Assembly: GCF_006345805.1 (NCBI RefSeq)
Contig: NC_043026.1
Span: 10,106,001 to 10,170,000 of the forward strand
Direction of reading: 5' to 3'
DNA: 64,000 nucleotides
Source: Octopus sinensis
Lineage: Eukaryota
Below are positions 1,058-61,197 of this stretch, in pieces (position 1 is the first letter of the stretch; each line of letters opens with the position of its first letter). The translations under genes were made by a program, and so were the position numbers. The notes beneath the pieces are model-generated. The model was given only the letters and a program-made list of their open reading frames with translations. It did not search any database and was not told the origin of the DNA.

Positions 1058-3446
1058 TGGTGCATAATTATTGCAGCTTTTTTTCAACAAATTTTATTTG
1101 AAATCATTTTTATTATTATTATTATTTTTATTAATAATAATTATTATTATTAATGTGATGAACGAGCAGAATCGTTACAAAATGCCAGACAAAATGCTTT
1201 GCATCATTTCTTCCAAGTTTAACGTTTTGAGTTCAAATCCTGCCGAGGTTGACTTTGTCTCTCATCCTTTTACAATTGATAAAATAAGAACCAGTTAGGG
1301 GCTGGGGTTGATTTCAGGCCTTCTCCCTATAGTAGGAAGGATTATTATTATGATCATCAAAACATGAAAAAAGTTGAGGGCATAGATGTAAGATTAAGGA
1401 ATTCACTTCACAAACTTGTGGTCTCAGGTTCAGTCCCACTTCGCAGCACCTTAAAGAATTAACTTCTTCTAATGTTCCAGGTTGACTTAAGCCTTGTGAG
1501 TGGGTTTCGTACATGGAACTGATAAAGCCTATGGTATATACATGTGTGTGTCTATATTAGTACTTGTTTGTGTATGCATGCGTGTGTGTGTGTGTGTGCA
1601 TATGTCTGCACACGTCTCCTTGTCTTGACATCTGCTGCGAATTATAAACAAATGTCACGTCGCACAAACAGTGTCGTTTATTTGCAGTGTTCCACCAGAA
1701 AACATATCCAACCATTGTGCTGTTCATGTTGGAAGAACTTGGGGAAATATTCTCTTGCTTGAAACCAGCTGAGGATTGGTGAGCCTCATCGAGTGTAGTC
1801 ATAGACTTGACTGAGTGGCACTCACAAGAACCTGGCAGGAAACAAAACAAAATTATGAGGGAAAACAACAACAAATAATAAACAGAAAAGAAAATACAAT
1901 ATCATTATAAAGGTTTTGACATCCATTTTCCCTAACTGGCATGGGTAGGACAGTTGGAGAGGAAGCAGTGAGCCAGAGGACATTGCTGAGCTCCAATGAA
2001 AGATTTGGCAAGATTTCTACAGCTGGATGATCTTCTTAACACCAAATGCACACACACATGTGTGTATATGCGTGCATGGGAGTATATGAATGTAAAAACA
2101 TGGTTTTACTTATGTTTGATTGTACATCTGATTTTGTATGCTAGCATGGGTTAGATGAATATATTATTGCACAGACACCTACACGCACACACTCAGCTTG
2201 AGTTCACCTCTTTCTGTAGCAGCAGCAGCTACATGCCCTCTCATATTTATCACACCCCTATCACACACAACTTATCATTCACTTCCAAGATCACACATCC
2301 TTCATATCGCCCATGTCACTGTCACCTGTGTCCCTACTGCCACGCCCCTATCACCCCTACCTCTACCTTTCATCTCTCAATCACTCTCTCTTCTTCTTTT
2401 TACTCTACTATCTTACTGCTTTGACAAAGATTGGCAGTAAATCTCTTCTCTTCACCATTCTTCCAATGAAACTAGGAATGTCACTGGACCTACCTGGGTC
2501 TCTCCCCAACACTCAGCCACTTCTTTTCATATATTTATTACCCTAGATCTCTCACACATCCCAAGGTATATGTGAAACCCAGAGATTGAGGGGAACCTTT
2601 AGTTTTGTCAAGGACATGGTGATTGTCTCTAGCGATGGTGCCATAAAATGCACCCAGTGCACATTGTGCAGTGGTTGGTGTCAGGAAGAGCATCCAGCTG
2701 CAGAAAGAAAACCAGAAAATGTAACTTCAGACAAGATATTCTTTGAACCATCCAACCCATTCCAGCATGGAAAGTGGGGGTAATATGATGATCATCATAC
2801 ATACATACAGATGTATGGATGTATAAATATACATATATGCATCTTTGTGTATATATTATACACATTCATTCTTATATATATGTGGTATGTGCATGTAAAT
2901 AAATATGCACATATATAATCATTAGTAATACTTATATTCCATCTAACTAGCAAAAGGTTCAGTCTGCCTTGTATCTGACAAATGTCTATGAAACATAATA
3001 AAGTCTATGTTTTGCTAATTGTTCCATGTTAACGAAGTTTGAATATGATTGCTGTGTGTTGGAACATAATATAGCATGTACACCAATTAAAGTTAATTTT
3101 CTCTACAGCAGAGAGTGTCTCGTTATTGAGTGCTTTTGGAGCAGGGGAATCTCTTTGACTAATTATCGTTAAATAAATCTAAGCCACACATGACTATTAA
3201 TTTGAGATGTTGAGAGCAAATATCATTTCCAGTGAATATAATTATTGCTAATATTTAGACTCCATGTAATTAATGAAACTTATTAATACATCTTAGAATA
3301 AATTGTAATAAGTTGTTTAAATATTAATTAGACAAGATTAATTCACTGACAGAAATACATAAATGTTTTGTTTGTGTTTTTCAAATGATGAAGCAAATAT
3401 CATCTCCCTGAAACTTTAATATTTTCACAAAGTTAAATATTTTCCT

Positions 3447-3461
3447 AATATTTCATTACAG
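3447..3461 (+). promoter_or_regulatory. putative 3' splice acceptor upstream of the 1818-aa ORF
   Basis: aatatttcattacAG|attcactATG, with AG at 3460-3461. Confidence 0.55.
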
Positions 3462-3468
3462 ATTCACT

Positions 3469-6400
3469 ATGGAACACCAAACAAAACCTACCCTTCAGAA
3501 AAGAGCTTTAAGGGACTCAACACCAAAATGGGATGAAGAAGGAGTTGACTGTCAAAGGTGTAAATATGTGAGAGATGACGGTTCAAGGAGAGAAATGTCC
3601 GAGAAACGATCTTCATCTCAGCCAACAACAAAACAAAAAAGACATAAAGGAGACCCTAAAAACTGGGAAATAATGGGAAGACGAAATATTTTGGACAAAC
3701 ACATATTTTATACAAGATTCAATGCATATAATGACAAAATGAATTTGTTGATAAATTCTCGGGAAAAAATATGTACTTTTTTAAAAAGTATAGGAATAGA
3801 TACAAATACTTTTCTAAAACATTTTACACAGAAAATAGAAATTTTGATGAAAGACATTAAAGAAAACGTTTACAATCAAGAATTTATAATTTTTGGAAAA
3901 TTAGAATTGTTCCTGGAACACTATTTACAGAGAAAAATTTTACAAGACAAACACAAAACCATTGAACCACCAAAAGTAACCACAAAATTCCGGCCTCTTA
4001 GCCCGGTTGTAACCAGAGAAGCAAAGATCGAGGAATCTGGAGAAGAATTTGACAAAAGCACAATATCCAATGTCATTGTCATACGTGAGGGAATGGTAAC
4101 ATATTCCCGCCATTGTATGACAATATGTGTGACAAGAAATGGTGACAGAAATGATGTTCATTGTCCATCTTCTGTCACCGATTTCAGCAGAATTGGTGAA
4201 GACATGGTCCTAGCAACCCTCCCCTTCCAAGAAATGATTCTTATTATCAGCCCCAAAACCTTCAAGATCAAAAGGATACAGTTGGGGTTATATTTGGTTG
4301 CTTACTTGGAACATTCTACACTTATAGGTGTAGAAATGTTTGGTAAGACTGTTTACCAAATTGACTGGGAGGGTAATAGAATCAGATATGAATTTATTAC
4401 CAAAGAAACACCTACAGATATTGCTGTAGGTGTCCAGAATATTCTTTTAATATCATTTCCAAGTATTAACACAGTAATCTGTTTTAAACTGGATGGCCAA
4501 CAGTTATGGGAGGTAGAGACCCATTCTCTGCACCTCCCTAGTAAAATCTCTCTGTACCAAAATTATTTCTATGTCCTCCAGGGACAGATTATTTATAGGA
4601 TTTCGGCTAAAGGTGGTGTAACAAAGAGGGACATTGGCAGGAAATGCCACTCTATTTCTGTTGCTAAAGATACCATTTTGGTAACAGATTATTGCGGTAA
4701 ACCACATGGTATTCAAATGAATAAAGACTTTTGGCCCAAACTGTCATACAACCACCAGCTACATACCCCCAGTTTAAAAGACTATATTGATATTGAGGAT
4801 TGCTACAACATTACAAATATTCTACTTATGTCTACATCTTCTATATTAATAATTTACAAAAACAAGAAAGCTAAATTATTCACTGATAATGGGGAAATAA
4901 TTAGCCAGAGTAATTTAGTTTTCCTTGAGCTTCCTTCTTTCTGTTGTAGAATAAACGCAAACAAATTCCTGGTATTTTACCGTGAAATTAAAGGATTTCA
5001 GTATATCACCTGTCCTGAATTGAGAAAAGGCCCTTTAATAAAGGTGCAAACTGATTACATGAAAATATGTCATGTTGTATCAAATAAGTGTTTAGCTGTG
5101 ACCACTGCTGAAAACAAAAGTGAGGTCCATATCCTATGGATCAACGAAGATAAAGTTGACATTGCAGAAAGAATTTCTCTGGGACATCATAATGTCAGCA
5201 TTGCTGCAACTCCCATTAATTTTGTAGTCGTAGATGGAAACGAAAATAAAATGGTATTTTATTCCTCATGTGGTGAAGAACTTTTTCAAAAATACCTTCC
5301 ATTCTATGGCTACCCTCATCACATCTACTCTGATAATGTTTATTTCTATGTCCTCTTCAGGAGACACTCTATTCTCAGATGTTACGATCTATATGGACAA
5401 ATGAAATGGCAGTGGGAACTGCCTTTCCCTGTTCACCCTCACATTGCTGTTTTCCAAGGAACTCTTTATGTCCCCGACACTCAACTCAACAGGGTTCTTC
5501 TTTACAAGTATCAAGACCGGTCGTCTGGCTGTTGTTTACCCACGAAAAATCCTTATATCAGAAATCTAAATCTACGACTCAAAGAAAAGGAGAATGACCA
5601 AAAACTTGTCATTGGCGAAATATGTAATCTGTCCAATGGTCAGTTGGTGGTGTCCGACATCAAGCATGATTGCTTGTTGTACATTTCTGAGGAAGGAGAC
5701 ATTGTGTCCAGATTATCTCTGCCATCTACAGCCACAGATATATGTCGATGGGATTCTGTTCATATAGGGGTCACATTACCCCTACAGAAACAATTAAGGG
5801 TCATCGGAAACCTATCAAAGACAGTGAGAAGTGTATCATTAAGGCAGCCTTATGTACAGGTGTGTAAGATAGGTGAACGTGAAATTGTTTGTTATTGTGA
5901 TAAACCATCATATTTAGACATTTTAGCCATCAATTATTATAATCAAGTTGAAGTAATTAAGACAATTAATATCCCATTTTTTGTGAAATCATTATCAATA
6001 GACAAGGAAACACAAAAGATATTAATTGTTACGAAGGGAAAAGCATTTCTGTACAACACTAGAATAGGTGGGGGTGGTCATGGCACTGATCATCATCATT
6101 GTAGTATTAAGATGGTCCCCAGTGTTTTAATGTCCCAAGTGACACGTCCCCCTAATCTCTATGGTGGATCTATTGACCGAATGTTTGTATATCTTATAGA
6201 GAACAGCCGTATGTTTGCTATAAACGATCATAATTTGTTGGTTAATGATCTCGTTACAAACAAGCAATTTAATAATTATATCGACCTGGTGGATGTATTT
6301 TCCCGAAACATTTCTCTCAGTGAAATGTTGTCTTCCACTTTATATCTACAGGACCTGACAGTTTCTGATAAAGCCAGACATATTCCTCTCCCTAAACATT

Positions 6401-8925
6401 TGGGAGACGAGGGACCAGCGGAGATTAGATGTTTGGTTATTACAGAAAATAATCTGATTGCAGGATGGGACAAGGATAATGGAAACATAAAGATATTCAC
6501 ATTGGATGGTCAACATTTGGATTCTATCAAAGTGAATGTTTATTTTAGTATTAAAATGTGTCGATGGCAGTCAAACACACTGGTCATTACGAATGGGGAT
6601 TATTTAGATGATAAACACCAACTGTTGACATTAAAAGTGGAATTTCCATTGTCGTTGGTAATTTACCAGACAAGAAATAAATATAATTGTGTGGCTTCTT
6701 TATTAAACAATCAACTGGTTTTTAGTACATTGGGAGATGTAAGACATTTGCATTTTGTTGATATTGATGAAATACATTCGAGTGTGAAGGAAATAAAAAA
6801 AATAGACATACCTGAACCATTATTAACGGGAAACGAAGATGGAAATAATTATTCTGGCGGCATCCAGGATATTATAATTACTGCTGAAGATGTCATCATT
6901 GTCTTTAACAAGAGATTCATCATTTTCTTCAAGAGTGATGGTCAATATTTACATTCAGTTAGACACTACATGTTGGATAATTATATTGATGATAACAAGA
7001 TGATAATTGATGACAGTTTTTTGTATATTTTTGGTGCGTGGGAGAAATATATTATTTCAACTGAATATCGAAACATTTTGTGTTTGACCCAGAATGGGGA
7101 ATACAAGAGAATATTTTTTAATCAAAGAATTTATAAAGATGAAGTAAATTTCTCCAGTATAAACTGTAAAGGACCAAGGTTTGTTGGAAGCCACACGTGG
7201 GGAAGGAGAAAGAATGAACTGTATGTTGAAGGGTTGTTTATGGTGAATCGAGACAGCTTCCCGGTTGCTCGTTTACAAACAGACGAATGTCCTGTTCAAG
7301 TAAAAGATTTTGATGTCTCTGAGGAAGGAAAGACAGTTGTGTGTGAAAAAGCCAATAATGGAAATGTTAAAATATTCGATGAAGATGGCCAGTTGCTATG
7401 TCACAGAAACGTTGCAAGTTTAGTTGGTGGTGTGTGTTTTACACAAGAATCACACATAATAGCCACGGTTCCTAAAAGGAAAGAAATATTTCAACTGAAT
7501 GGAGAAGATTTGCAGACATCTCAAGTTTGGTTGAGTCTCATCCCTTATGGTGTAATATGGAGAAAAGTGGCGGGTATTTACTGGTGTGTACATACTGAAT
7601 TGATTGAGTGTCATTGCATAAAGATTGATGGGGACCAAGTGAACATTCTGGAATCTGTGTCGTTATTAAATCTTGATTCTGGTCTTCATTTCCCTTCCAT
7701 TACATCTGAAACGAACAAGGAAATATTCAATAATGAATTAATTAATAAATTGGAATACAGAGGAGGAGATGGAGATGGAGGAGGAAGAAGAAGAGGTAAA
7801 TCAGGTGAAATAATTGGTAAAGGTAGATTAAAGGTGAGATGTGGTAAATACATAGCGGAGATTAATAATTCAGGAATTGATGAAATATCAGTAAGGAGAC
7901 TTCCATATAGAACAGCAATGGTCCCTTTTTCCATTCCTGCATTCGAGGAACCTGTTAATTATGATTATAGGGACATTAGGGACTGGAACAGTAAACTAAT
8001 TAAGTTAGATGAGAATGTGAGTGTGTTGATGTTTCGAGAAAGTGTCACATTAATCAGAACAACAACAACAACAGTGGACATACTTCAACATGAACAACAA
8101 CAACGACCACCACTGGACATTTGTCGGTGGACAGAGGAATGTTTCATTGTCGCCTTTGGGAGAGAAATGAGGGTCTTCAACAGGGATCTCTGTTGTTTAA
8201 AAACCATCAGAACTGAGAAATACTACAACAGGATTTATAAATACAACGACAATCAACTCGTGTGTGGTGGTCATTATATTAGAGACATAACTCAAGAAGA
8301 GAGACACAAGAAATACAAAAGAACATGGGAAAACAACAAGTATTACTATTATTGCATTGACCCCGACGCCTTTGACTCTTATTATGTGGATGTGGTTGAT
8401 TTCGAAGATGGGAAATGTAAAGATGAAGTGTGTCGTGGGGAGATGAAGAGATTGTTAAGGTTTGAGGGAGATGAAGGGGTGGATGGTGTGGGAGTCACAT
8501 CTTTTGGTGATGTTGTTGTTGTGAGGTGGGAGATGGAGGATAAGAGGGATGGAGTTTGGGAAGGTTTTTGTTTTGTGGAATGGTTCAGGGAAAAGTCTTT
8601 AGTGAGGAGGATAAGAATAAGAGAAAGAATGTTTTTTGGTCTGGGATTTTATATTACAAGACCTCATCTATCCAAAATTGGTGAATATGTTTACATAACA
8701 GATGGAGAAAACAATATTTACGAAATACCTCGACATATTGAAGAGGAAACATCTGAAGATGATGAAATCCTGGGATTTAAAGATAATCCAAAATATTTAC
8801 TCCTCAGAGCGTATGATAATGAAGTCTCTGAAGTTCTTGGTTTGGATGTTTCAGACAATTCTTTCATGGTTTTTGGAATTATTCTTGGACGTCAATCTTT
8901 TGCTTTCTTTTATTTTGACAAATAA
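3469..8925 (+). CDS. 1818-aa uncharacterised protein with multiple tandem degenerate NHL/TolB-like six-bladed beta-propeller units
   Basis: Uninterrupted 5457-nt ORF in AT-rich DNA, with an ATG 7 nt after a cattacag splice acceptor. Recurring blade motifs: PTDIAVGVQNILLISFP, ATDICRWDSVHIGVTLP, PLDICRWTEECFIVAF, GQLVVSDIKHDCLLYISEEG, NGNIKIFTLDGQHL, NGNVKIFDEDGQLL. The ORF is certain; the fold assignment is by eye. Confidence 0.8.
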   Translation: MEHQTKPTLQKRALRDSTPKWDEEGVDCQRCKYVRDDGSRREMSEKRSSSQPTTKQKRHKGDPKNWEIMGRRNILDKHIFYTRFNAYNDKMNLLINSREKICTFLKSIGIDTNTFLKHFTQKIEILMKDIKENVYNQEFIIFGKLELFLEHYLQRKILQDKHKTIEPPKVTTKFRPLSPVVTREAKIEESGEEFDKSTISNVIVIREGMVTYSRHCMTICVTRNGDRNDVHCPSSVTDFSRIGEDMVLATLPFQEMILIISPKTFKIKRIQLGLYLVAYLEHSTLIGVEMFGKTVYQIDWEGNRIRYEFITKETPTDIAVGVQNILLISFPSINTVICFKLDGQQLWEVETHSLHLPSKISLYQNYFYVLQGQIIYRISAKGGVTKRDIGRKCHSISVAKDTILVTDYCGKPHGIQMNKDFWPKLSYNHQLHTPSLKDYIDIEDCYNITNILLMSTSSILIIYKNKKAKLFTDNGEIISQSNLVFLELPSFCCRINANKFLVFYREIKGFQYITCPELRKGPLIKVQTDYMKICHVVSNKCLAVTTAENKSEVHILWINEDKVDIAERISLGHHNVSIAATPINFVVVDGNENKMVFYSSCGEELFQKYLPFYGYPHHIYSDNVYFYVLFRRHSILRCYDLYGQMKWQWELPFPVHPHIAVFQGTLYVPDTQLNRVLLYKYQDRSSGCCLPTKNPYIRNLNLRLKEKENDQKLVIGEICNLSNGQLVVSDIKHDCLLYISEEGDIVSRLSLPSTATDICRWDSVHIGVTLPLQKQLRVIGNLSKTVRSVSLRQPYVQVCKIGEREIVCYCDKPSYLDILAINYYNQVEVIKTINIPFFVKSLSIDKETQKILIVTKGKAFLYNTRIGGGGHGTDHHHCSIKMVPSVLMSQVTRPPNLYGGSIDRMFVYLIENSRMFAINDHNLLVNDLVTNKQFNNYIDLVDVFSRNISLSEMLSSTLYLQDLTVSDKARHIPLPKHLGDEGPAEIRCLVITENNLIAGWDKDNGNIKIFTLDGQHLDSIKVNVYFSIKMCRWQSNTLVITNGDYLDDKHQLLTLKVEFPLSLVIYQTRNKYNCVASLLNNQLVFSTLGDVRHLHFVDIDEIHSSVKEIKKIDIPEPLLTGNEDGNNYSGGIQDIIITAEDVIIVFNKRFIIFFKSDGQYLHSVRHYMLDNYIDDNKMIIDDSFLYIFGAWEKYIISTEYRNILCLTQNGEYKRIFFNQRIYKDEVNFSSINCKGPRFVGSHTWGRRKNELYVEGLFMVNRDSFPVARLQTDECPVQVKDFDVSEEGKTVVCEKANNGNVKIFDEDGQLLCHRNVASLVGGVCFTQESHIIATVPKRKEIFQLNGEDLQTSQVWLSLIPYGVIWRKVAGIYWCVHTELIECHCIKIDGDQVNILESVSLLNLDSGLHFPSITSETNKEIFNNELINKLEYRGGDGDGGGRRRGKSGEIIGKGRLKVRCGKYIAEINNSGIDEISVRRLPYRTAMVPFSIPAFEEPVNYDYRDIRDWNSKLIKLDENVSVLMFRESVTLIRTTTTTVDILQHEQQQRPPLDICRWTEECFIVAFGREMRVFNRDLCCLKTIRTEKYYNRIYKYNDNQLVCGGHYIRDITQEERHKKYKRTWENNKYYYYCIDPDAFDSYYVDVVDFEDGKCKDEVCRGEMKRLLRFEGDEGVDGVGVTSFGDVVVVRWEMEDKRDGVWEGFCFVEWFREKSLVRRIRIRERMFFGLGFYITRPHLSKIGEYVYITDGENNIYEIPRHIEEETSEDDEILGFKDNPKYLLLRAYDNEVSEVLGLDVSDNSFMVFGIILGRQSFAFFYFDK

Positions 8926-8980
8926 ATATTTTATGACAAATAAATATTTTATGACATAAATATTTTATGACAAATAAATA
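8917..8980 (+). repeat. ~4 copies of an 18-bp unit (gacaaataaatattttat) overlapping the stop codon, supplying candidate AATAAA polyA signals
   Basis: Directly visible. The TAA stop lies in the first unit and the third unit has a 2-bp deletion. Confidence 0.85.
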
Positions 8981-9235
8981 TCAAACTTCAATCTTGTTGT
9001 TGGTGTTGTTCTTATTTTTCTTCTTATTTATTTATTTCTTCTTTATCATCATTCATTTCATCATCATCATCATCATCATCAATGGGTTCACCTGGGAATC
9101 GAACCTGCATCGCATACATTGCATTCTACACAAACAATTAGTGTTGTAACATTCCTCAACACGATGTCTTTGTGTGTGTGTATATTCATATACAGTATAT
9201 GTACATGTGTTTATATATGTACACACACACACACG

Positions 9236-9896
9236 TCAGTCCACCTGTGCATACCTTCCTGCTTGTGACACTTGTGAAGACCTGTTGAGGCAAGTCAAAT
9301 CAAAGTCAAATCGAATCAAGTCAAACCAAATCAAATAGATGAACATCAATGGAATTTGTATCCTTGTGGTACCAGTGCCGGTGGCACATAAGAAAACCAT
9401 CCGAACGGGACCGTAGCCAGTACCGCATCGACTGGCCTCCGTGCCGTGGGCACGTAACAAACACCATCCGATCGTAGCCGTTCACCAGCCTCGTCTGGCA
9501 CCTGTGCCGGTGGCACATAAGAAAAACACCGAAAACACCATATTCGAGCGTGTCCGTCTGCCAGCCTTGTCTGGCACCTGTGTTGGTGGCACATAAGAAA
9601 ACACCATCCGAGCGTGGCCGTCTGCCAGCCTCGTCTGGCACCTGTGTCGGTGGCACATAAAAAACACCATCTGAGCGTGGCCGTCTGCCAGCCTCGCCTG
9701 GCACCTGTGTCGGTGGCACATAAAATCACCCACTACACTCTCGGAGTGGTTGGCGTTAGGTAGGGCATCCAGCTGTAGAAACACTGCCAGATCTGACTGG
9801 CCTGGTGCAGCCTTCGGGCTTGCCAGACCCCAGTTGAACCGTCCAACCCATGCCAGCATGGAAAGCGGACGTTAAACGATGATGATGATGATGATG
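9236..9896 (+). mobile_element. RTE LINE 3' UTR-only copy with an internal ~60-bp tandem unit and (GAT)n tail
   Basis: Matches the 3' UTR that follows the RTE ORF at 11145 and ends cccatgccagcatggaaagcggacgttaaac(gat)n. Confidence 0.9.
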
Positions 9897-10167
9897 TATA
9901 GAAATATGGCTATAAAGATAAACAAAATCACTATCTCCTTTTTTTACAGTGTATTTTGCAAAACAATATTTCTGAAAAAAGTCCAAAACGAAGAAATAGG
10001 GGTGAGAGGAGGAATTGAAATTTTGAAATACCAATTTTTTTCCCCCTTTTTTTTGTTCAGATTCATAATCTCCGTACCCGAAAACGGGAGTCTATGTAAA
10101 AAAAAATAAAGGAAGGTTTTGGCAGAGTTACAAAAGAAAATCTTGCTTCTATCTATCCGAATGCCTA

Positions 10168-10242
<75 letters not shown>

Positions 10243-10519
10243 CACTCTCACAAGATAGCTATCTATCTGTCAATCTGTTTCTTCTCTCTCTGTCTCTCCC
10301 ACATGCTATCTATCTCTTTGTCTCTCACTCTCTCTTTATGTATAATTTTGTCTCTCATCCTCTCTCTTTATCTATCTGTCTACCTCTATGTATGTCTCCT
10401 GTTTTTCTCTTTTTTTCTTTCTCTCTCTCTCACTCTCCATCTGTCTGTTTCCCTCTCTATCTATCTATCTAACCTTTCTGTGTATCTCTCTATATATGTG
10501 TATATTATATATATATATA

Positions 10520-11480
10520 TCATCATCATCATCATCATCATCGTTTAACGTCCGCTTTCCATGCTGGCATGGGTTGGACGGTTCAACTGGGGTCTGGCAA
10601 GCCCGAAGGCTGCACCAGGCCAGTCAGATCTGGCAGTGTTTCTACAGCTGGATGCCCTTCCTAACGCCAACCACTCCGAGAGTGTAGTGGGTGATTTTAT
10701 GTGCCACCGACACAGGTGCCAGACGAGGCTGGCAGACGGCCACGCTCGGATGGTGTTTTTTATGTGCCACCGACACAGGTGCCAGACGAGGCTGGCTGAC
10801 GGCCACGCTCGGATGGTGTTTTCTTATGTGTCACCGACACAGGTGCCAGACGAGGCTGGCGGATGGCCACGCTCGGATGGTGTTTGTTACGTGCCCTCAG
10901 CACGGAGGCCAGTCGTTGCGGTACTGGCTACAGTCACGTTCGGATGGTTTTCTTATGTGCCACCGGCACTGGTACCACAAGGATACAAATTCCATTGATG
11001 TTCATCTATTTGATTTGGTTCGATTTGATTTGATTTGATTCGATTCTCACTTGCCTCAACAGGTCTTCACAAGTGTCACAAGCAGGAAGGTATGCACAGG
11101 TGGACTGACTACGTCCCAGGTAGGGGCCACGGGTTATGGCTTCACTAGACTTGCCGGGTCTTCTCACGCACAGCATACTTCCATAGGTCTCGGTCTCTAG
11201 TCATTTCCATGGTGAGACCTAACGTCCGAAGGTCGTGCTTCACCACCTCGTCCCAGGTTTTCCTGGGTCTACCTCTTCCATGGGTTCCCTCAACTGCTAG
11301 GGATTGGCACTTTCTCACACACCTATCTTCATCCATTCTCGCCACATGACCATACCAGCGCAATCCTCTCTCTTGCACACCACAACTGATGCTTCTTAGG
11401 TACAACATTTCTCTCAAGGTACTAACGCTCTGTCGAGTAAGTACACTGACATTACACATCCATCGGAGCATCGGAGCATC
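10520..11480 (-). mobile_element. 5'-truncated RTE LINE (ORF C-terminus 11145-11471 plus 3' UTR and (GAT)n tail)
   Basis: ORF reads LRWMCNVS...GLRWYGHVARMDEDRCVRKC...GRGRPRKTWDEVVKHDL. The tail appears as (CAT)n at 10520-10541. Confidence 0.92.
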
Positions 11481-12290: not shown

Positions 12291-12674
12291 TTCATATAAT
12301 TATTCCAACTTAAATTAGCCACTTCAAAACACTTACCCAAAATTAAAAATCTTTAATTCGGTCTGATTCATTAACATTTTGCCAACTACATTTTACTATT
12401 TTTTCGGAGCTACACATTCACCGATTTTTCCTTGGGACTTTTTCTATTGATAATTTTCCACCATGCCTCGACAGAAAAGATCCAATATAGGTCGGCAAAC
12501 AAAAGCTGCAAAGGAAAGTAAACTTATGCGTGCAAATGAATTTGCCGAGGACGTCACCTGGAGGAACTCTCTCAATGCACTTGGAATGGCTTCGGCGCAA
12601 AGGGAAAGTGAAAAGCAGTGTTGTCATCGGTTAGCACGTATTGCTGTGCAACGAGTAACGTTCAGCATGCAGAA

Positions 12675-12900
12675 CAAGAAATGCTTCCTCTACTGCTGCT
12701 GCACAATCTGCAGAGAATGCAGCACAGTGCACTGTTCCACTTACAAGAAATGCTTCCTCTACTGCTGCTGCACGAGCTGCAGAGAATGCAGCACAGTGCA
12801 CTGTTCCACTTACAAGAGATGCTTCCTCTACTGCTGCTGCACAATCTGCAGAGAATGCAGCACAATGCGCTGTTCCACTTACAAGAGATGCTGCTGCACA
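12675..12900 (+). repeat. 69-bp minisatellite, ~3.3 copies, inside the Helitron ORF region
   Basis: Unit gaaatgcttcctctactgctgctgcacaatctgcagagaatgcagcacagtgcactgttccacttacaa, giving 23-aa repeats in several frames. Confidence 0.92.
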
Positions 12901-13062
12901 TGCTACAGAGACTACAGGGGAAAGACAACAATGCAGCGAAGGGCTTCATGACATTTCTACTCAAGGCCATGCTCCTTGCGTTGGTCAGTGACAGCATTCA
13001 GCTGCGATCCTACAATTGACTGCAATAATCACCCTGATGTTCAAATACGCTGCATGTCCACA

Positions 13063-15698: not shown

Positions 15699-16781
15699 CT
15701 ATGGCTTGTCCTTTGAATGAATACGTTTATGTGCAGATAAGTTTCTATTGTCAGAGAATGATTTACCACAGATATCACAATGAAATGGTTTTTCTCCTGT
15801 ATGAATACGTTTGTGTCTAGCTAACACACTGCTGTCAGAAAATGATTTACTACACATACCACAGTGATATGGCTTCTCTCCTGTATGAATACGCTTGTGT
15901 GTAGTTAACATACTATTTTGAGAGAATGATTTACCACAGATATCACACTGATATGGTTTGTCTCCTGTATGAATACGTTTGTGTGTAGTTAAATGACTTC
16001 TGTAGGAGAATGATTTACCACAGACTTCACAGTGATATGGCCTCTCTCCTGTGTGAATACGTTTATGTGTAGTTAAATTACAACTTTGAGAAAATAATTT
16101 ACCACAGACATCACAGTGATAAGGTTTTTCCTTTGTATGAATACGTTTATGCGAAGTCAAGCCACTTCTGTCGGAGAATAATTTACCACAGATATCACAA
16201 TGATATGGTGTCTCTCCTGTATGAATACGTTTGTGTCTAATTAACAAACTATTTCGAGAGAAAGATTTACCACAGATATCACAGTGATATAGCTTCTCCT
16301 TTGTATAAATACATAAGTGTGAAGTCAAGGAATCTCTGAGAGAGAATGGCTTACCACAGATATCACACTGAAATGGTTTCTCTCCTGTATGAATACATTT
16401 GTGACTAGTTAAGTGACCACTGCTAGAGAATGAGTTACCACAAATATCACAGTGAAATGGTTTCTCTCCTGTATGAATACGATAATGTTTTGTCAAGGCA
16501 CTACTGTCAGAGAATGGTTTACCACAAATATCACAATGATACGGTTTCTCTCCGGTATGAGTTCGAGTGTGTCTAGGTATGGCACTATTGCAAGTGAAAG
16601 CTTTACCACAGATCTCACAGTGATATGGTTTTTCCCCTGTATGAATACGTCTGTGGGAAATTAGGTTACATTTTAGGGAGAAGACCTTTTTACAAATGTC
16701 ACAGTCATACGACAATTTTCTCATCTCTTTTATGTGTTCAGAAGAAATCACTTCTTCAACTTTTTCACTCTTTTCCATCAT
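15699..16781 (-). CDS. C2H2 zinc-finger protein Z1 (12 fingers, finger 5 degenerate H>Y)
   Basis: CxxC-x12-HxxxH repeats with TGEKP linkers. The track start at 16793 is TTG; the first ATG is at 16781. Upstream acceptor ctttctatatcatttcAG at 17100-17099. Confidence 0.93.
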   Translation of the reverse strand: MMEKSEKVEEVISSEHIKEMRKLSYDCDICKKVFSLKCNLISHRRIHTGEKPYHCEICGKAFTCNSAIPRHTRTHTGEKPYHCDICGKPFSDSSALTKHYRIHTGEKPFHCDICGNSFSSSGHLTSHKCIHTGEKPFQCDICGKPFSLRDSLTSHLCIYTKEKLYHCDICGKSFSRNSLLIRHKRIHTGETPYHCDICGKLFSDRSGLTSHKRIHTKEKPYHCDVCGKLFSQSCNLTTHKRIHTGERPYHCEVCGKSFSYRSHLTTHKRIHTGDKPYQCDICGKSFSQNSMLTTHKRIHTGEKPYHCGMCSKSFSDSSVLARHKRIHTGEKPFHCDICGKSFSDNRNLSAHKRIHSKDKP

Positions 16782-18867
16782 TTTCCCCTGCAAATCACAA
16801 CCTATAAATTTTTTTTCTACTTTTCTATTTGTGTTCAGTGTTACTTTTGTATAGCAACACTTAGATACACTTATCCACGTTCAATCAGCATACAAGCTCC
16901 TCTTCTTGATACTCCAGTCAGTGATGTCCAGAAATTTGGTTAATGATAGCAGCTCAGAGTAAATGTTTTACAGGGCCTTTATCTCAGAATTGTAGAAACA
17001 ATCTGATACATCTATTTTGTATAATATTTTCCTTTAGTCCTTAAAACGTGGTAGGTATTGAGGATGTTTCTTCTGTTATGCCAGTGTCATCTGATGTTCT
17101 GAAATGATATAGAAAGAGCAGTGTAAGATGTAGAGGCTACTTAAAATATAGATTCATAGACAAGCAGATAGATGAACAATGGCAGGAGTCAAAGAAAAGA
17201 AAAGTTTGTTAGTGCTCTGTCAACACGCTCAATTAGAAAATAGAGGCTTGGTTAACAAACGCATTATTATCAACACACAGAACAGGCACGACACTTAGAC
17301 AGATTACAGAGGCCACGCGCATAGTAATAGACAGACTGAGCCTTAACAGAAAACATAAATGGAACAGCCAGCACACTATGTAACATGACAACAGAATGGG
17401 AGAGAGAAAAAAAGGAAAAAAGACACAGATACAAACAGAATAATACACCCTAACCCACTTACCCACACAAAACACAAAATGTAAAAAAAACTAGCAAGGC
17501 AAAGAAGTGAGAAAATACTGTGAAAAAAACTAAATAAAGAGCAGATACAAACACTAAAGTAAGCAAACCCCTTCCCACATACACACACATGTGGGATGGA
17601 GAGTCACTGAAGAAGTCACAGAACATGTTATGAAAGATTTCTAGACAAAGGACATAAAATACGAACAATAATAAATCTGAAGTGAAGGACGAATAAATAC
17701 AGGTATACCTCACCCTACATCGTTAATCAGTTCCAGACATACTACTTTCCCGCAAGTCCCTTATTTTGGCAGTTCGGAAGGGGTGAGTCCCGCTCCAGAT
17801 GTTTTGGAAATTTTTTTTTCATATTCAATAAATGAATTAAGGTGAGTTCCTGATATGCCACAACCCCACTTTTATTTTTGTCCAGAAAACAGGTGGGGGT
17901 GGAGTGAAACTTGGAAAATTCACCCCCTCCCCAGCTTCACAGGGAAAATTTTTACACGAGGGTCAATACTTGTTGGTAAGGGTACCTTTCCAGTAGCACA
18001 CATCCTTTTAGAAATTGTAGCAAACTTCCTCTCTCCATTATATATAAATACTTGCAAACGTAATAGGTAACAGCTAACCTTCGGTCACTGTTTTGGACCC
18101 TGTTGTGTCTGTAATGGTTAAGTTAAGTACACAATAATATGAAATGTCAGAGTCAGCAGTTGTAACGATAAAAATTTGTTGTTATAATTGCATACTGTAG
18201 GATGTGAAAGATGAACAATGCATGAAGTTTTAAGGAAATATTTATTTACCATTATGTTACAATACCTTACCTCGATGGGCAGGTTATGATAAATCCAAAA
18301 GCATGCGAAGTAAAGTTTGTGTTTGTGTCCTCTTCAGTGTTTAGTAGTAAATACCGAGAGAGATAGAATGATGTTGTAAGAGAACAGAATTAGAGATAGT
18401 GAGAGTTGTAGGGTGTGGGACGTTGTCTCACAGTTGCTGACAGCAAACTTCATTTCTCCCTCTGATCAAGGTCCTAGCTGGTTAGCCAGACTTCGTACTC
18501 ATTGAGTCATCACTGAGTATCTTTTTGCTTGGGGTCTATGCTTTTATAACTATCCAGAAAGGTAGACATAGCAAGAACAATGGATTTAGTTGGTGGTCTT
18601 GTTATCTCTATTCTAGCTTTTGTTGAAGTAGAAGAGGTTAGAAAGGGTCAAGTGGTGAAGACATTATTTCAGCCTAGCTAAAGGCATCTGGAAAATGTAA
18701 AACTGCTATCAGAGAAAAACCATTGTTTCATCGTGGGAAAAGTTCTGTTGCAGAGTTAATTTAAACTTGGTTATGGTGGATTGAATCCACTTCATGCTTG
18801 CAAGATCCACTACATGTCTACCACTGATTGGTTGGTATTTGTCTCTTACTCTATCACGCACCAATAT

Positions 18868-25586: not shown

Positions 25587-26756
25587 CTATCCTGTATGAA
25601 TATGCTGGTGACTAGATAAGTGACTACTTCGAGAGAATGATTTACCACAGATATCACAGTGATGTGGCTTCTCTCCCATATGAATACTTCTATGGGATTT
25701 TAGGCTACTACACTGAGAGAAAGATTTACCACAGATATCACACTGATATGGTTTCTCTCCTGTATGAATAAGATTATGTCTTGTTAAGGCATTAATTTGA
25801 GAGAACGTTTTACCACAGATATCACAATGATATGGTTTCTCTCCTGTATGAATATGATTGTGTTTTGTTAAGGCAATATTTTGAGAGAATGATTTACCAC
25901 AGATATCACAGTTATATGGTTTCTCCCCTGTATGAACACGATTGTGTACAGTCAACTGACTACTGTTAATGAATGATTTACCACAGATATCACACTGATA
26001 TGGCTTTTCTCCTGTATGAATACGACTGTGATTTGTTAAGGAAATACTTTCAGAGAATGATTTACCACAGATATCGCAACAATATGGTTTCTCTCCTGTA
26101 TGAATACGTTTGTGTGTGGTTAAGTGACCATTTTGAGAGAATGATTTACCACAGATATCACAATGATATGGTCTCTCTCCTGTATGGGTACGTGTGTGTT
26201 TAGATACGTCACTCCTTCGAGCAAATGACTTACCACAGTAATCACAATGATACGGTCTCTCTCCTGTATGACTACGTCTGTGTATAATTAAATTACTACT
26301 GTTAGAGAATGATTTACCACAGGTATCACAAATGTATGGCTCCTCTACTGCATGAATACGAATGTGTTTTCTTAGAGCAGAATTTACAATGAATGATTTA
26401 CCACAGGTGTCGCAGTAATGTGGTTTCTCTCCTGTATGAATACGTTTGTGTATGATTAAGCAACTATTTTCAATGAATGATTTAGAACAGATGTCACAAC
26501 GATAGGGTTTCTCTGCTGTGTGAATATGTTTGTGTCTAGATACGTCACTACTTTGAGAGAATGATTTGCCACAGATATCACAAGGATATGGTTTCTCTGC
26601 TGTGTGAATATGTTTGTGTCTAGATACGTCACTACTTTGAGAGAATGATTTGCCACAGATATCACAACGATAGGGTTTCTCTCCTGTACGAGTAAGTTTG
26701 GGCATAATTAGGTTACTTCCTTTGACAGAAGGACTTTGTACAGATATCACACTCAT
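25587..26756 (-). CDS. C2H2 zinc-finger protein Z2 (13 fingers), truncated by an in-frame TAG and with ancestral finger 1 frameshifted
   Basis: Finger repeats with TGEKP linkers, ATG at 26756 and acceptor gtaatttcAG at 27172-27171. The stop is GAG>TAG in a linker. Confidence 0.88.
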
Positions 26757-33643: not shown

Positions 33644-35494
33644 TTACCCTTCATCTTTCTCCCTTGTATGAATACGTCTGTGTGCAATCAGGTTACGATT
33701 TTCAGAGAATGATTTACCACAGATATCACACTGACATGGTTTCTCTCCTGTATGAATACGAATGTGTATTGTTAGGTGACTACTTTGAGAGAATGATTTA
33801 CCACAGACATCACAATGATATGGTTTCTCTCCTGTATGAATATGTCTGTGCCTAGATAAGTGACAACTTCTAGAGAATGATTTTCCACAGACATCACACT
33901 GATATGGCTTCTGTCCAGTATGAGTATTACTATGGGCATTTAGGCTACTACATTGAGAGAAAGATTTACCACAGATACCACAGTGATATGGTTTTTCTCC
34001 AGTATGAATACGATTGTGTTCAATTAACTGACTGTTGTTAGAAAACGATTTACTACAGATATCACACTGATATGGTTTCTCACCTGTATGAGTACGATTG
34101 TGTTTTGTTAAGCCAGTACTTTGGGAGAATGATTTACCACAGATATCACAGTGATATGGTTTTTCTCCAGTATGAATACGATTGTGTTCAGTTAACTGAT
34201 TACGGTTAGAGAATGATTTACCACAGATATCACAATGATATGGTTTCTCACCTGTATGAATACGATTGTGTTTTCTTAAGGTAGTATTTTCAGCGAATGA
34301 TTTACCACAGATATCACAATGATATGGTTTCTCTCCTGTATGAATACGCTTGTGTCCAGTTAAATGAATACGTTGAGAGAATGATTTACCACAGATTTCA
34401 CAACGATATGGTTTCTCTCCAGTATGAATACGTTTGTGTACAATAACCTGACTACTTCGCAAGAATGATTTACCACAGATATCACAACGATACGGTTTCT
34501 CTCCTGTATGAATACGTTTATGTATAATTAAGTAACTACTGTCAAGGAATGATTTACCACAGATATCACAATATGGTTTCTCTCCTGTATGAATATGTTT
34601 GTGTCTAATTAAGTGACTACTATTAGAGAATGATTTACCACAGATATCACAATGATATGGCTTCTCTCCTGTATGAGTACGAATGTGTTTTCTTAAGGCA
34701 GTATTTTCAATGAATGATTTACCACAGATATCACAACGATATGGTTTCTCTCCTGTATGAATATGTTTGTGTCTAGATAAATGACCACTGTTAGAGAATG
34801 ATTTACCACAGATATTACAACATGGTCTCTCTCCTGTATGAATACGTTTGTGTATAGATACGGCACTACTTTGAGAGAAGGATTTGCCACAGATATCACA
34901 AGGATATGGTTTCTCTGCTGTGTGAATATGTTTGTGTCTAGATATGTCACTACTTTGAGAGAATGACTTGCCACAGATATCACAACGATAGGGTTTCTCT
35001 CCTGTGTGAACACGTTTGTGTTTAGTTAGGTCACTACTTTGAGAGAATGACTTGCCACAGATATCACAACGATACGGTCTCTCTCCTGTATGACTACGTC
35101 TATGTATAATTAAATTACTACTGTTAGAGAATGATTTACCACAGATATCACAATGGTATGGCTCCTCTACTGCATGAATACGAATGTGTTTTCTTAGAGC
35201 AGAATTTACAATGAATGATTTACCACAGGTGTCGCAGTAATGTGGTTTCTCTCCTGTGTGAACACGTTTGTGTTTAGATACGTCACTACTTTGAGAGAAT
35301 GATTTGCCACAGATATCACAACGATAGGGTTTCTCTGCTGTGTGAATATGTTTGTGTTTAGATACGTCACTACTTTGAGAGAATGACTTGCCACAGATAT
35401 CACAACGATAGGGTTTCTCTCCTGTACGAGTAAGTTTGGGCATAATTAGGTTACTTCCTTTGACAGAAGGACTTTGTACAGATATCACACTCAT
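33644..35494 (-). CDS. C2H2 zinc-finger protein Z3 (21 fingers; two linkers one codon short; ancestral finger 1 frameshifted)
   Basis: 616-aa ORF of finger repeats, ATG at 35494 (alternative in-frame ATG at 35443) and acceptor gtaatttcAG at 35910-35909. Confidence 0.92.
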
Positions 35495-42558: not shown

Positions 42559-44061
42559 ATGGAAAAGAGTGAGAAAAGTATGATTTCCTCTGAACCCATG
42601 ACGAAAGAGGAAAGGAAATTGTCATACGAGTGTGATGTCTGTAAAAAGGTCTTCTCCCTAAAATGTAACTTAATTTTTCACAAACGTATTCATACAGGAG
42701 ACAAACCATATCATTGTGAGGTCTGTGGTAAATCTTTCTCTCATTGTAGTAGCTTCAGTACACATAAACGTGTTCATACAGGAGAGAAACCGTATCATTG
42801 TGAAATCTGTGGTAAATCATTCTCTCAGAGTAGTCATTTAGCTACACATATACGTATTCATAAGGGTGAGAAACCCAATCGTTGTGATATCTGTGGTAAA
42901 TCATTCTCTCGGAGTGGTCATTTAACTACACATATACGTATTCATAAGGGTGAGAAACCCTATCATTGTGATATCTGTGGTAAATTATTCTCTCAAAGTA
43001 GTCATTTAGCTACACATATACGTATTCATAAGGGTGAGAAACCCAATCGTTGTGATATCTGTGGTAAATCATTCTCTCGGAGTGGTCATTTAACTACACA
43101 TATACGTATTCATAAGGGTGAGAAACCCTATCATTGTGATATCTGTGGTAAATCATTCTCTCAAAGTACTCATTTAGCTACACATATACGTATTCATAAG
43201 GGTGAGAAACCCTATCGTTGTGATATCTGTGGTAAATCATTCTCTCGGAGTGGTCATTTAGCTACACATATACGTATTCATACAGGTGAAGAACCATATC
43301 ACTGTGATATCTGTGGTAAATCATTCACTCAAAATAGTCACCTCATTACACATATACGTATTCATACAGGAGAGAAACCATATCACTGTGATATCTGTGG
43401 TAACTCATATTCTGTAAGTAGTTTGTTAACTCGACACAAGCGAATTCATACTGGAGAGAGACCATATCACTGTGAAATCTGTGGTAAATCATTCTCTAAT
43501 AGTAGTGTCTTGTCTAGACATAAACGTATTCATACAGGAGAGAAGCCATATCATTGTGATATCTGTGGTAAATCATTCTCTGGCAGTAATGTTTTAATTT
43601 CGCACAAACGTGTTCATACAAAGGAGAAGCCGTATGACTGTGATGTCTGTGGTAAACGATTCTCAGAAAATAGTCACTTAACTAATCATAAACGTATTCA
43701 TACAGGAGAAAAACCATATTGTTGTGATGTCTGTGGTACATCATTCTCCTATAGAGGTTCATTAACTGCACACAAACGTAGTCATACAGGTGAGAAACCA
43801 TATCGCTGTGATATCTGTGGTAAATCACTCTCTCGAAGTAATGACTTGATTGCACACAAACGTATTCATACAGGTGAGAAACCATATCATTGTGAGGTCT
43901 GTGGTAAATCATTCTCTCAAAATAGTAGCTTAACAAAACACAAACATATTCATACAGGTGAGAAACCATATCATTGTGGTATCTGTGGTAAATCATTCTC
44001 TCAAAATAGTGTCCAGAGAAAACACGAACGTATTCATACAGTAAAGAAAGGAAAAGTGTAG
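42559..44061 (+). CDS. C2H2 zinc-finger protein Z4 (17 fingers)
   Basis: 500-aa ORF, ATG at 42559, acceptor tctgatttcAG at 42234-42235. Fingers 3-8 are a two-finger module repeated three times. Confidence 0.95.
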
Positions 44062-46207: not shown

Positions 46208-47126
46208 GTAAGTATTAAACAAGGAAAATATTCGTTGTTTTTGATTCGGTAGACTTTTGGCTGCTATTTCTAGCGGAGAAAGCTATCTCGTACAATCTAT
46301 TTGGTTGCCACGTCAGTTGGTAGTGTTTTAGTTTGAGAAATAGTCTGGAATACACTCCAACTACTGAAATGATCAGAAACTGGCATGACTGTGTTTCAAA
46401 TTGCTTTTTATAGCCTAAATGTGTTTATGGGGAGAAAAATATTGAAAAACATCAATACATGCAAGGGTGAGAAGGAAACCAGGTAGGGGGTGTTGGGATG
46501 TGCTAGAAACAACAGCCAAATCTCCCTTAAATTACACTTTTACCGGATCTTTTCGATTTGACCGGCAGTTTATAAAATAATTTCTACGTAACTAAACACT
46601 TTTAAACTTCGTATACCGGTAGAATGTGTTTATAAAACATCTTTTTGTCTTGGCTTTATTGAGAAAATTCTATGGTTTGTAAGATATTTGTTGTTGTTAA
46701 GGGAAATGTTTATTTCTACAGTTTATCTCAATAGAAATGAATCTGTATTTTTTGAGTAGCCTCTACATCTTACACTGTTGTTTCTATCTGATTTCAGGCC
46801 ATCAGATGACATTGACATAACAGAAACAACATCCTCAATATCTACCATGTTTTAAGGAATAAAGGAAATTATTATACAAGACAGATGTATAGCATTGTTT
46901 CTAGAAATCTGTGGAAGAATTCCTGTGAAACATTTCTGAACATCACTGACTGAAGCATGAAGAAGAGTGGCTCCTGAGCTGATGAAACTTGGATAAATTT
47001 ATGTAATTGCTGCTAGAGAAAGGTAACCCTGGACAGAAATACAGCTGTAGTAGGAGCATTAGTAAGGAATAAAGTGTAAGAAGAAAGCAGGAAAAATATT
47101 TAAACTGGGATTTGAGAGGAAAAAGA

Positions 47127-48551
<1,425 letters not shown>

Positions 48552-51174: not shown

Positions 51175-51620
51175 CATGTCCTTGGCAGTCACCGCCCATG
51201 TTTCTCTGCCATGTAGCATAGCTGTTCGCACACACGTGTCATACCGTCTACCTTTCACTCTGAGTGAGAGGCCCTTTGTTACCGGCAGACACAGGAGGTC
51301 TCTGAACTTTGCCGAAGCTATTCTTATTCTAGTAGCTATTAGCTACTTCTAGTTTTTCCTCCTGGCTTGTGATGGAGGCTGTTCTCTGCTCATTTTCAGT
51401 GTTTATTGCCCCTGTGCATCTGCCACACACAATAACTATCTTCCCAGTTAACCTTCTTTTGATATTACTGCACCACTTATGTATCGAAAGCTTACACTGG
51501 GTACATCTTATGGAGTTTCTGCCTGCACCTTTCCTACACATCGAGCAGGGCCATCTACCTGAAAGGATTTGTGATTTGTCTGCCTTCCTACTTACTAAGA
51601 CTTTGCTTTTGCTAGGTTGA
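51175..51620 (-). mobile_element. RTE RT fragment with a Cys-rich insert, in Z6 intron 1
   Basis: CRKGAGRNSIRCTQCKLSIHKWCSNIKRRLTGKIVIVCGRC...KLEVANS followed by RIRIASAKF..LL...KGLSLRVKGR. Confidence 0.85.
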
Positions 51621-54734: not shown

Positions 54735-54828
<94 letters not shown>

Positions 54829-56093: not shown

Positions 56094-56366
56094 TGTATTT
56101 TATTCAAACATGAACAGGATATTTCTACAAAAACAGAAAGAGAGGGAAAAACATGTCTAGGTAATACCTTATTTTCATAGAATGATTTAAGGCAGATACC
56201 ACGGATGAGTTAAAATATTTGGGCCAAGCTGGCAATGAATGGACCAATCAAGAGAGAAATAGAAAGGGCATTGTGAGTAGCGACGTATAACAACATCCGA
56301 GACGATGATCAATACAGCCAGGTATAAATACTCACACAAACACAGAAAGACCTCCTAACAGCAGGT

Positions 56367-61164: not shown

Positions 61165-61197
<33 letters not shown>

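Follow-up and report, generated by a model that had tools for sequence, protein, structure and literature searches.

Results

Locus and gene structure

The window analysed here is a stretch of 64,000 nucleotides from the Octopus sinensis genome (contig NC_043026.1, positions 10,106,001 to 10,170,000, forward strand), and our subject is a gene near its beginning whose product is predicted to be a chain of beta-propellers. An initial annotation of this DNA had placed here a 5.4-kb open reading frame (ORF) of 1818 amino acids (aa), and we find exactly this at 3469..8925 on the forward strand, starting with ATG, with its stop codon and in a single coding exon. All remaining ORFs of the window are of 616 aa or fewer, and at the 34-37% GC found around the ORF a chance origin of 1818 open codons is excluded. 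An in-frame TGA lies 5' of the ORF start, at 3409-3411.

The sequence read directly upstream of the ATG contains a pyrimidine-rich tract with 'cag' at 3459-3461, 8 nt from the start codon, and this acceptor tract is kept with its flanking 70 nt in paralogues of O. bimaculoides (L001) and O. vulgaris (L002). The O. vulgaris gene model P0009 ('MLFTMED...') is reproduced exactly when the donor ATGCT/gtaaat, in an exon 17.5 kb upstream, is joined to this acceptor. The AG at 3460-3461 had already been singled out as a possible acceptor, and its pyrimidine tract, its conservation among paralogues and its use by the O. vulgaris model bear this out. At this site the one coding exon is probably spliced to an exon further 5' that is mostly untranslated, and the description of the gene as intronless therefore holds for the coding sequence (CDS) and not for the gene, which has an upstream exon. 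The conserved Met at 3469 is likely to be the true start. A single-exon CDS is also present in P0018 (O. bimaculoides), P0040, P0045, P0065, P0068 and an Argonauta gene, gene length being equal to 3 x aa + 3 in each of these six other members of the family. At the 3' end, short tandem units multiply AATAAA hexamers resembling poly(A) signals, which we infer to act as the poly(A) signal of the gene. The features of the transcription unit are:

3440..3461, forward strand: splice acceptor with pyrimidine tract (sequence, paralogue conservation, P0009 model)
3469..8925, forward strand: complete CDS, 1818 aa and stop (ORF; homologues 57-90% identical over full length)
8911..8978, forward strand: three tandem units of about 16-18 nt (TATTTTATGACAAATAAA), overlapping the stop codon and running into the 3' untranslated region

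Six predicted beta-propeller domains

AlphaFold2 (AF2) models of two overlapping halves of the protein, built from a 33-sequence family alignment, had mean predicted local distance difference test (pLDDT) scores of 49.6 and 61.1, and divide the protein into a head and six beta domains (D1 to D6), all on the forward strand:

3469..3678, forward strand: disordered basic segment, aa 1-70 (AF2 pLDDT 24-33; contains KQKRHK, which resembles a nuclear localisation signal (NLS); hypervariable among paralogues)
3679..3939, forward strand: four helices, aa 71-157 (AF2 with DSSP, H71-96, H98-107, H112-131 and H138-157; pLDDT 42-70)
4069..4713, forward strand: D1, aa 201-415, 23 strands, about 6 blades (AF2 pLDDT about 54-83; Foldseek matches tandem propellers)
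4810..5505, forward strand: D2, aa 448-679, 23 strands (AF2 pLDDT about 48-80)
5566..6363, forward strand: D3, aa ~700-965, beta-rich and propeller-like (AF2 pLDDT 21-41)
6376..7230, forward strand: D4, aa 970-1254, 24 strands, hypervariable loops (AF2 pLDDT mostly 70-87)
7258..7968, forward strand: D5, aa 1264-1500, about 11 strands modelled (pLDDT 52-72 for aa 1292-1398, the rest of low confidence)
7756..7839, forward strand: Gly/Arg-rich insert inside D5, aa 1430-1457 (YRGGDGDGGGRRRGKSGEIIGKGRLKVR; alignment; AF2 pLDDT 23-30 over aa 1399-1490)
7993..8919, forward strand: D6, aa 1509-1817, 24 strands, hypervariable loops (AF2 pLDDT mostly 60-90)

With about 24 short strands per 215-310 aa or so, the domains that are modelled with confidence (D1, D2, D4 and D6) agree with six-bladed propellers. 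The initial annotation had suggested five or six concatenated propellers; the models give six, four of moderate to good confidence and two of low confidence. D3 carries near-invariant GQLVVSD...TDICRWD..IGVTLPL motifs in the family alignment. When both halves were compared with the PDB using Foldseek, multi-propeller proteins ranked at the top (E 5e-17 to 1e-11, about 8-12% identity), among them IFT-A subunits, UTP/WDR tandem propellers, LRP6, Apaf-1, DDB1, EMC1, LRP2 and BT4673. The likeness of these models to known structures confirms the fold class, but in a generic way.

The six domains are also homologous to one another. Comparison of all domains by hhalign, using a broad alignment of 14 sequences extending down to 29% identity (A5), gave significant matches between D2 and D4 (E=7.6e-8), D4 and D5 (9.4e-8), D2 and D3 (7e-7), D3 and D6 (9.3e-7), D4 and D6 (9.5e-7), D3 and D4 (5.8e-6), and D1 and D2 (3.9e-5), in alignments covering 140-240 columns. 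These pairwise matches join all six domains in one homology network. The N-terminal region, as negative control, gave E=0.22-0.83 against every domain, and a narrow family alignment gave weaker but concordant between-domain matches. Repeated blade motifs had been noted in the protein, and here the initial annotation stands in part. Its literal strings are rarer than it implied, since D[IV][CA].W occurs twice (DICRW, aa 757 and 1550), NGN[IV]KIF twice (1004 and 1297) and G..VV.D once, and self-BLASTP of the 1818-aa protein detected no internal repeat. The repeats are real at the level of family profiles, with which alone they become visible. Their claimed spacing of roughly 270-300 aa agrees with the first-blade motifs of D3, D4 and D5, which begin at aa 724, 994 and 1287 and so lie 270 and 293 aa apart. 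On these models and profiles, the 1818-aa protein is predicted to be a series of six tandem, mutually homologous beta-propeller domains behind a basic head.

Relationship to NHL propellers

In single-sequence searches the window protein reached the threshold of no Pfam model, and phmmer likewise returned nothing above threshold from PDB sequences. Relationships emerged with profiles. An exhaustive hmmsearch with a profile of aa 700-1818 against 1.84 billion representative proteins gave 30 matches, of which 28 belong to the family, whole or as fragments, and come from Argonauta hians and three Octopus species (O. vulgaris, O. sinensis and O. bimaculoides); the remaining matches were two weak outsiders, P0062 and P0063. 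The better of these, P0062 (CAE1315789.1, E=1.2e-4), is a protein of the cuttlefish Acanthosepion (Sepia) pharaonis with RING, B-box and NHL domains all above Pfam cutoffs, and it is its NHL propeller that aligns to D4. The second, P0063, is a 467-aa ENA metagenome protein with no Pfam domain that aligns to the start of D3 (E=3.6e-4).

The match to P0062 was substantiated by hhalign, which aligned the family profile A5 to this protein over 277 columns with 96% probability (E=3e-9). By domain, D4, the most NHL-like of the six, matched the P0062 NHL propeller at E=3.9e-12 (97.6%), followed by D6 (3.4e-6), D5 (5.9e-6) and D3 (1.4e-5). Shuffled versions of D4 gave E>=0.21, and fifteen shuffles together with the reversed sequence gave E>=0.07 and scores of at most 20 against NHL, compared with a score of 85 for the real D4 match. 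The family profile was also searched against 177,635 distinct PDB sequences, with 20 matches at E<=10; 11 of the top 14 were NHL-domain structures, namely TRIM71 (4.8e-4), Brat, TRIM3, TRIM2 and Thin, all single-propeller domains of 277-409 aa. They were matched through the blades IAGWDKDNGNIKIFTLDGQ (D4), GKTVVCEKANNGNVKIFDEDGQ (D5) and NGQLVVSDIKHDCLLYIS (D3), and in particular the D4 motif NNLIAGWDKDNGNIKIFTLDGQ matches a blade of TRIM71 and the D5 blade GKTVVCEKANNGNVKIFDEDGQ matches both TRIM71 and Brat. The NHL-like character that the initial annotation had read from the blade motifs is thus upheld both by a cephalopod TRIM-NHL propeller and by a PDB profile search dominated by NHL domains.

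Pfam itself places the family less clearly. The best NHL score in the family, in P0045, is 18.5 bits against a cutoff of 20, and two of 14 members match that model at all. Because these scores lie below the cutoff, we call the domains NHL-type by distant homology and do not assign them to Pfam NHL. Other sub-threshold matches were to DUF4934 and WDR90 and, in homologues, also to SGL and ANAPC4_WD40. No WD40 repeat model passed the Pfam threshold in the window protein, and the strand counts suit six blades.

Family distribution and evolution

A search of 5.8 billion protein clusters returned 35-36 homologues, all from O. vulgaris, O. sinensis or O. bimaculoides. They are 57-90% identical, the full-length ones are about 1780-1800 aa long, and all are labelled 'uncharacterized' or 'hypothetical'. 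The best matches to the window protein are 84-90% identical, the closest being O. vulgaris proteins at up to 90%. Profile-based homologue searching found no relatives outside Octopus beyond this first set, and the exact window protein and two zinc-finger ORFs of the window are absent from a collection of 15 billion proteins. The window protein is either a copy that lacks annotation or the product of an octopodid genome that does. Two Argonauta hians proteins are 38% identical to the window protein, and two divergent Octopus lineages, P0040 and P0045, are 44% and 29% identical to it; the latter each lie on a different large chromosome and each cluster at >=90% identity with counterparts in the other two Octopus species. 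Family proteins are of about 1,650-1,900 aa and of soluble intracellular type. The 28 family matches among the 30 of the exhaustive scan bear out the claim of lineage specificity, and the family is octopod-wide and confined, on present sequence data, to octopods. It has been maintained through the whole history of the incirrate octopods sampled.

In O. vulgaris, the subfamily that includes the window copy has undergone tandem amplification; the copies there are mostly on one 29.19-Mb chromosome and family genes are arranged head-to-tail. Three O. vulgaris models of the family are fusions, P0001 (2526 aa) to a second copy, P0002 (2053 aa) to C2H2 zinc fingers and P0008 (2120 aa) to the hAT-associated domain DUF4371, and these are probably annotation read-through from one gene into its neighbour and not real.

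The ratio of non-synonymous to synonymous substitution rates (dN/dS) between O. vulgaris and O. bimaculoides orthologues is 0.39 for P0040/P0065 (dS 0.10) and 0.45 for P0045/P0068 (dS 0.06), which is purifying, though relaxed, selection. For the window copy the ratio is 0.51 against P0018 and, against paralogues, 0.42-0.45 over about 1450 codons of the propeller core, 0.65-0.98 in the N-terminus and 0.91-1.08 over about 125 hypervariable codons, the last by a crude pairwise Nei-Gojobori calculation. The hypervariable stretches of the two domains are:

D4: aa 978-988, 1089-1093, 1117-1136, 1170-1199 and 1243-1246
D6: aa 1612-1618 and 1655-1734

Diversifying selection was considered for these stretches and found no positive support, as a dN/dS of about 0.9-1.1 is not above 1 and fits relaxed constraint; the signature of an arms race is so far not seen. 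Entropy among paralogues is highest in the N-terminus (aa 1-194, 1.36 bits), followed by D4 (0.98) and D6 (0.93), and is 0.47-0.52 in D2, D3 and D5; in every domain loops are more variable than strands. The view that the conserved domains are simply under stronger constraint holds in part only, because dS is low there too, at 0.10 in D2, D3 and D5 compared with 0.37-0.40 in D4 and D6 between the window copy and P0009. Gene conversion or concerted evolution therefore explains part of the conservation of D2, D3 and D5.

These data bear on whether the window copy is itself a working gene. We think it unlikely that it is a young silent or decaying duplicate, its frame kept open by recency or gene conversion with no function of its own. 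The absence of the exact protein from the 15-billion-protein collection, the many partial models in the O. vulgaris array, the heterogeneous dS that reflects gene conversion and the near-neutral rates of the N-terminus and variable loops are what such a copy would be expected to show. Yet all 1818 of 1818 codons are open despite a dS of 0.24-0.37 to the paralogues compared, the propeller codons give a dN/dS of 0.42-0.45, and the start codon, acceptor and AATAAA signals are intact. That the ORF is part of a transposable or otherwise selfish element is very improbable: its many O. vulgaris copies (some in models fused to DUF4371 or zinc-finger domains), its single-exon CDS amid zinc-finger genes and the interspersed repeats flanking it at 1-439 and 9235-11418 would suit such an origin, but Pfam scans found no transposase, reverse transcriptase, integrase or other mobile-element or enzymatic domain, no long terminal repeat or terminal inverted repeat pair surrounds the ORF (the flanks being microsatellites and a separate foldback element), the copies are grouped in tandem on one chromosome instead of being scattered, the two divergent members on other chromosomes have O. 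bimaculoides counterparts at 92-94% aa identity with the dN/dS of 0.39-0.45 given above, and the spliced 5' exon is conserved.

Head region and accessory segments

The N-terminal region of about 194 aa contains 39 Lys and Arg against 29 Asp and Glu (net +10), with the NLS-like KQKRHK at aa 55-60; together with the helices modelled at aa 71-157 this agrees with its earlier description as basic and helical. The linker from the helical segment to aa 200 is modelled as disordered. From its predicted structure, the helical segment is possibly an oligomerisation or adaptor module. In hhalign comparisons it had no significant match to the coiled coil of P0062 (E=0.2) or to the propeller domains. There are no more than 3 Cys within aa 1-194, none of them conserved. 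No transmembrane segment or signal peptide was found. Hydropathy over 19 residues peaks at 1.61, in a beta-strand region that is charged, and the N-terminus, with a mean Kyte-Doolittle hydropathy of -1.64, is strongly hydrophilic.

At least two unrelated types of N-terminus occur in tandem paralogues, one reading 'MEDQTENT...KQKRHKGD...YTRFNAY' and the other 'MEKINEEN...', and both join the same propeller body near aa 160 (O. vulgaris P0004, P0006 and P0007, and P0003, compared with window aa 1-160). The sequences suggest that exons or segments have been swapped inside the array.

Within the D5 insert, the Gly run is found in the amplified subfamily alone, and the basic core downstream of it is shared more widely. 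A reading of GGRRRGKS (aa 1438-1445) as a P-loop was rejected, as GxxxxGKS is not kept in divergent members and the segment is a low-confidence Gly-rich loop. The Argonauta hians homologues (P0041 and P0066; L005, BAAFZT010000002.1) have a low-complexity insert of about 90 aa between D5 and D6 that is rich in Q, P, Y, H and T (PPLQYHYTPPPLQYH... repeats), at a place where Octopus has a short QQQ/PQQ linker. In P0027 (O. sinensis LOC118768319) the last 45 or so aa depart entirely from the otherwise invariant ending (...VFGIIPGRQSFAFFYFDK), in the manner of a frameshift or mis-annotation.

Genomic neighbourhood

The zinc-finger cluster reported beside the ORF was recovered as a divergently oriented array of seven C2H2 ORFs between 15.7 and 60.5 kb of the window:

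15699-16793, reverse strand: C2H2 ORF
25587-26756, reverse strand: C2H2 ORF
33644-35494, reverse strand: C2H2 ORF
42559-44061, forward strand: C2H2 ORF
47112-47981, forward strand: C2H2 ORF
52815-54059, forward strand: C2H2 ORF
59240-60484, forward strand: C2H2 ORF

With 11-21 fingers each and mutual DNA identities of 75-87%, these are typical of the octopus C2H2 expansion, and C2H2 zinc-finger genes co-localise on a few chromosomes (2025 paper, PMC12513265). Adjacency to zinc-finger genes was rejected as a trait of the propeller family, as none of seven other family loci has a C2H2 array within 8-10 kb. The last two ORFs of the array lie in the two copies of a tandem segmental duplication of about 6.4 kb (51334-57630 and 57759-64000, 99.4-99.8% identity), each holding an identical 414-aa C2H2 ORF (52815-54059 and 59240-60484). 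The second copy reaches the window end, and the duplication is either a very recent event or an assembly artefact.

Directly downstream of the propeller gene there is a foldback (9235-9915 and 10505-11109) with inverted arms of about 290-390 nt (about 680 nt in total) that are 92-93% complementary and made of 63-64-nt tandem units (TTATGTGCCACCGACACAGGTGCCAGACGAGGCTGG...). The adjacent 300 nt (11119-11418) have a 72%-similar copy at the window start, 1-439. The foldback is probably an interspersed repeat resembling a short interspersed nuclear element or a miniature inverted-repeat transposable element. At 12674-12892, three tandem 69-nt (23-codon) units with 95-96% identity lie inside a 162-aa ORF (12463-12951, forward strand), which has no Pfam match and lies where the GC content of the window is highest (0.47).

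Discussion

We consider it likely that window 3469-8925 is an intact member of an octopod family of NHL-propeller proteins which acts as a multivalent binding platform. This judgement blends two parts of different strength: the structural and evolutionary identity of the protein, as a member of an octopod-restricted family with six NHL-type propellers, is highly probable, and its function as a binding platform, which is argued from the predicted fold, we regard as evenly balanced. The NHL propeller of a TRIM-NHL-like gene would have been duplicated internally six times, without the E3-ligase module. A protein with no catalytic domain would work by binding, and each propeller face could offer a ligand site, for RNA or for protein, as in Brat and LIN-41 or in TRIM32, making the chain a multivalent platform whose helical head would be used for assembly or for adaptor contacts. 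The top face of NHL propellers binds RNA in Brat and LIN-41 and proteins in TRIM32/Thin.

Several observations weigh against this interpretation. The AF2 models have predicted template modelling scores of 0.32 and 0.50 and derive from a shallow, paralogue-only alignment, confidence is low for D3 and for most of D5, and the number of six blades comes from strand counts and not from model coordinates. D1 and D2 by themselves are not significant against the NHL propeller (E of about 0.03) and are connected to NHL only indirectly, through D2-D4 and D2-D3. The gathering score of the Pfam NHL model (PF01436) is reached by none of 14 family members, with no NHL match at all in the window protein, and the best Foldseek matches are WD40-type tandem propellers and not NHL domains. 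A core cellular component would be expected to show tighter constraint than a dN/dS of 0.4-0.5. The binding-platform role is read from the fold alone. Finally, the net charges of the domains are +4 (D1), +2 (D2), +2 (D3), -5 (D4), -6 (D5) and -12 (D6), only the N-terminus (+10) and the R/G-rich insert being basic, and RNA binding through such near-neutral to acidic propellers is not favoured.

Some of these points would equally be expected if the domains were generic beta-propellers, WD40-like or of another six-blade class, in which the NHL-like blade motif D..N..I.iF..dG had arisen by convergence. Foldseek ranks the tandem propellers of IFT-A, UTPs, DDB1 and Apaf-1 highest, the sub-threshold Pfam matches are scattered over DUF4934, WDR90, ANAPC4_WD40 and SGL, and the Pfam NHL model stays under its cutoff in every member. 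However, a query with several propellers of its own draws multi-propeller chains to the top of the Foldseek ranking. NHL domains make up most of the leading matches in the PDB profile search, the alignment of D4 to a genuine TRIM-NHL propeller extends over about 215-277 columns (E 4e-12) with clean shuffles, and the strand counts fit six blades and not the seven of WD40. We therefore regard a generic origin of the domains as unlikely, and retain their identification as NHL-type.

A more specific role can be imagined by analogy for the amplified subfamily, as an octopod-specific intracellular recognition system directed against shifting targets, for example RNAs or proteins of viruses or transposons. 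In such a system D1-D3 and D5 would form a conserved chassis, and the N-terminus and the D4 and D6 loops would be diversified by tandem duplication and gene conversion, in a manner comparable to the finTRIMs of fish or to NLR arrays, though with neither an E3-ligase nor a NACHT module. On this view the place of the window copy at the edge of a C2H2 zinc-finger array would mark a neighbourhood that both share for genome defence. The charge and selection data do not favour the RNA or pathogen sensing that the initial annotation had suggested, and we consider the recognition role unlikely.

As a probable binding platform or otherwise, the family is of interest in several respects. Public databases list it only as uncharacterized or hypothetical, and it is now structurally defined by prediction. 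It would be an example of a widespread module for binding RNA or protein being built up into a giant multivalent scaffold. Cephalopod genomes have lineage-specific expansions that include protocadherins, C2H2 zinc-finger proteins and G protein-coupled receptors, and the present family, with two old conserved lineages and one young, tandemly amplified, gene-converting subfamily, offers a tractable case for the birth of a new gene family in octopods. Should RNA or non-self molecules prove to be its ligands, NHL biology would gain a new branch.

We found no full-length match to a characterised family with this architecture, so that its description as unusual stands; a search of the full-text literature yielded nothing on these loci or on octopus proteins with several NHL domains, and we know of no description of six tandem NHL-type propellers in an animal protein. 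The known systems that resemble it do so in separate respects. DUF4934 (PF16288), a bacterial family of six-bladed propellers, is the most frequent sub-threshold Pfam match (5 of 14 members, E down to 0.003, in D4), but at 18 bits the match falls short of the gathering cutoff of 27 and covers only about 60 residues. NHLRC1/malin, NHLRC2, the PAL domain of PAM and the teneurin NHL domain have a six-bladed NHL-type propeller, as do the octopod domains; in each of these proteins a single propeller is combined with an enzymatic or adhesion module, and none of them surfaced in our family searches.

Closest by shape are the multi-propeller scaffolds: DDB1, CPSF160 and SF3B3 with three propellers, the WD40 subunits of IFT-A, and the YWTD arrays of LRP4/5/6 and LRP1/2. 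Like the octopod protein they carry several beta-propellers per chain, and they supply the best Foldseek matches (E 1e-12 to 5e-17). In such scaffolds (DDB1, IFT-A, LRP) the propellers serve as docking platforms. They nevertheless belong to other superfamilies, with seven-bladed WD40-like propellers or YWTD propellers with EGF spacers and only about 8-12% identity to the octopod protein, in which Pfam found no EGF or Ldl_recept_b match. LRPs are moreover secreted or membrane proteins, and none of these scaffolds has six NHL-type units.

By sequence, the closest family is that of the TRIM-NHL proteins (Brat, LIN-41/TRIM71, TRIM2, TRIM3 and TRIM32/Thin), which have the same type of propeller. 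D4 aligns along the entire NHL propeller of the TRIM-NHL protein P0062, and D3, D5 and D6 do so more weakly; blades of TRIM71 and Brat share the motif D-x-x-N-x-x-I-x-[IV]-F-x-x-x-G with the octopod protein; and TRIM-NHL proteins are likewise of cytoplasmic type, without a signal peptide. Three of the four defining features of TRIM-NHL proteins (RING, B-box and a single C-terminal propeller) are nevertheless missing or not demonstrated. Pfam scans detected no RING family in the window protein even at E<=10 and no B-box in any of 14 family members, in accordance with what the initial annotation had seen, and with no recognisable TRIM coiled coil either the protein is without the E3-ligase module. 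Its propellers are not basic overall, unlike the basic RNA-binding NHL faces of Brat and LIN-41. In contrast to TRIM-NHL proteins, which end in one C-terminal propeller, the octopod protein is predicted to carry six in tandem.

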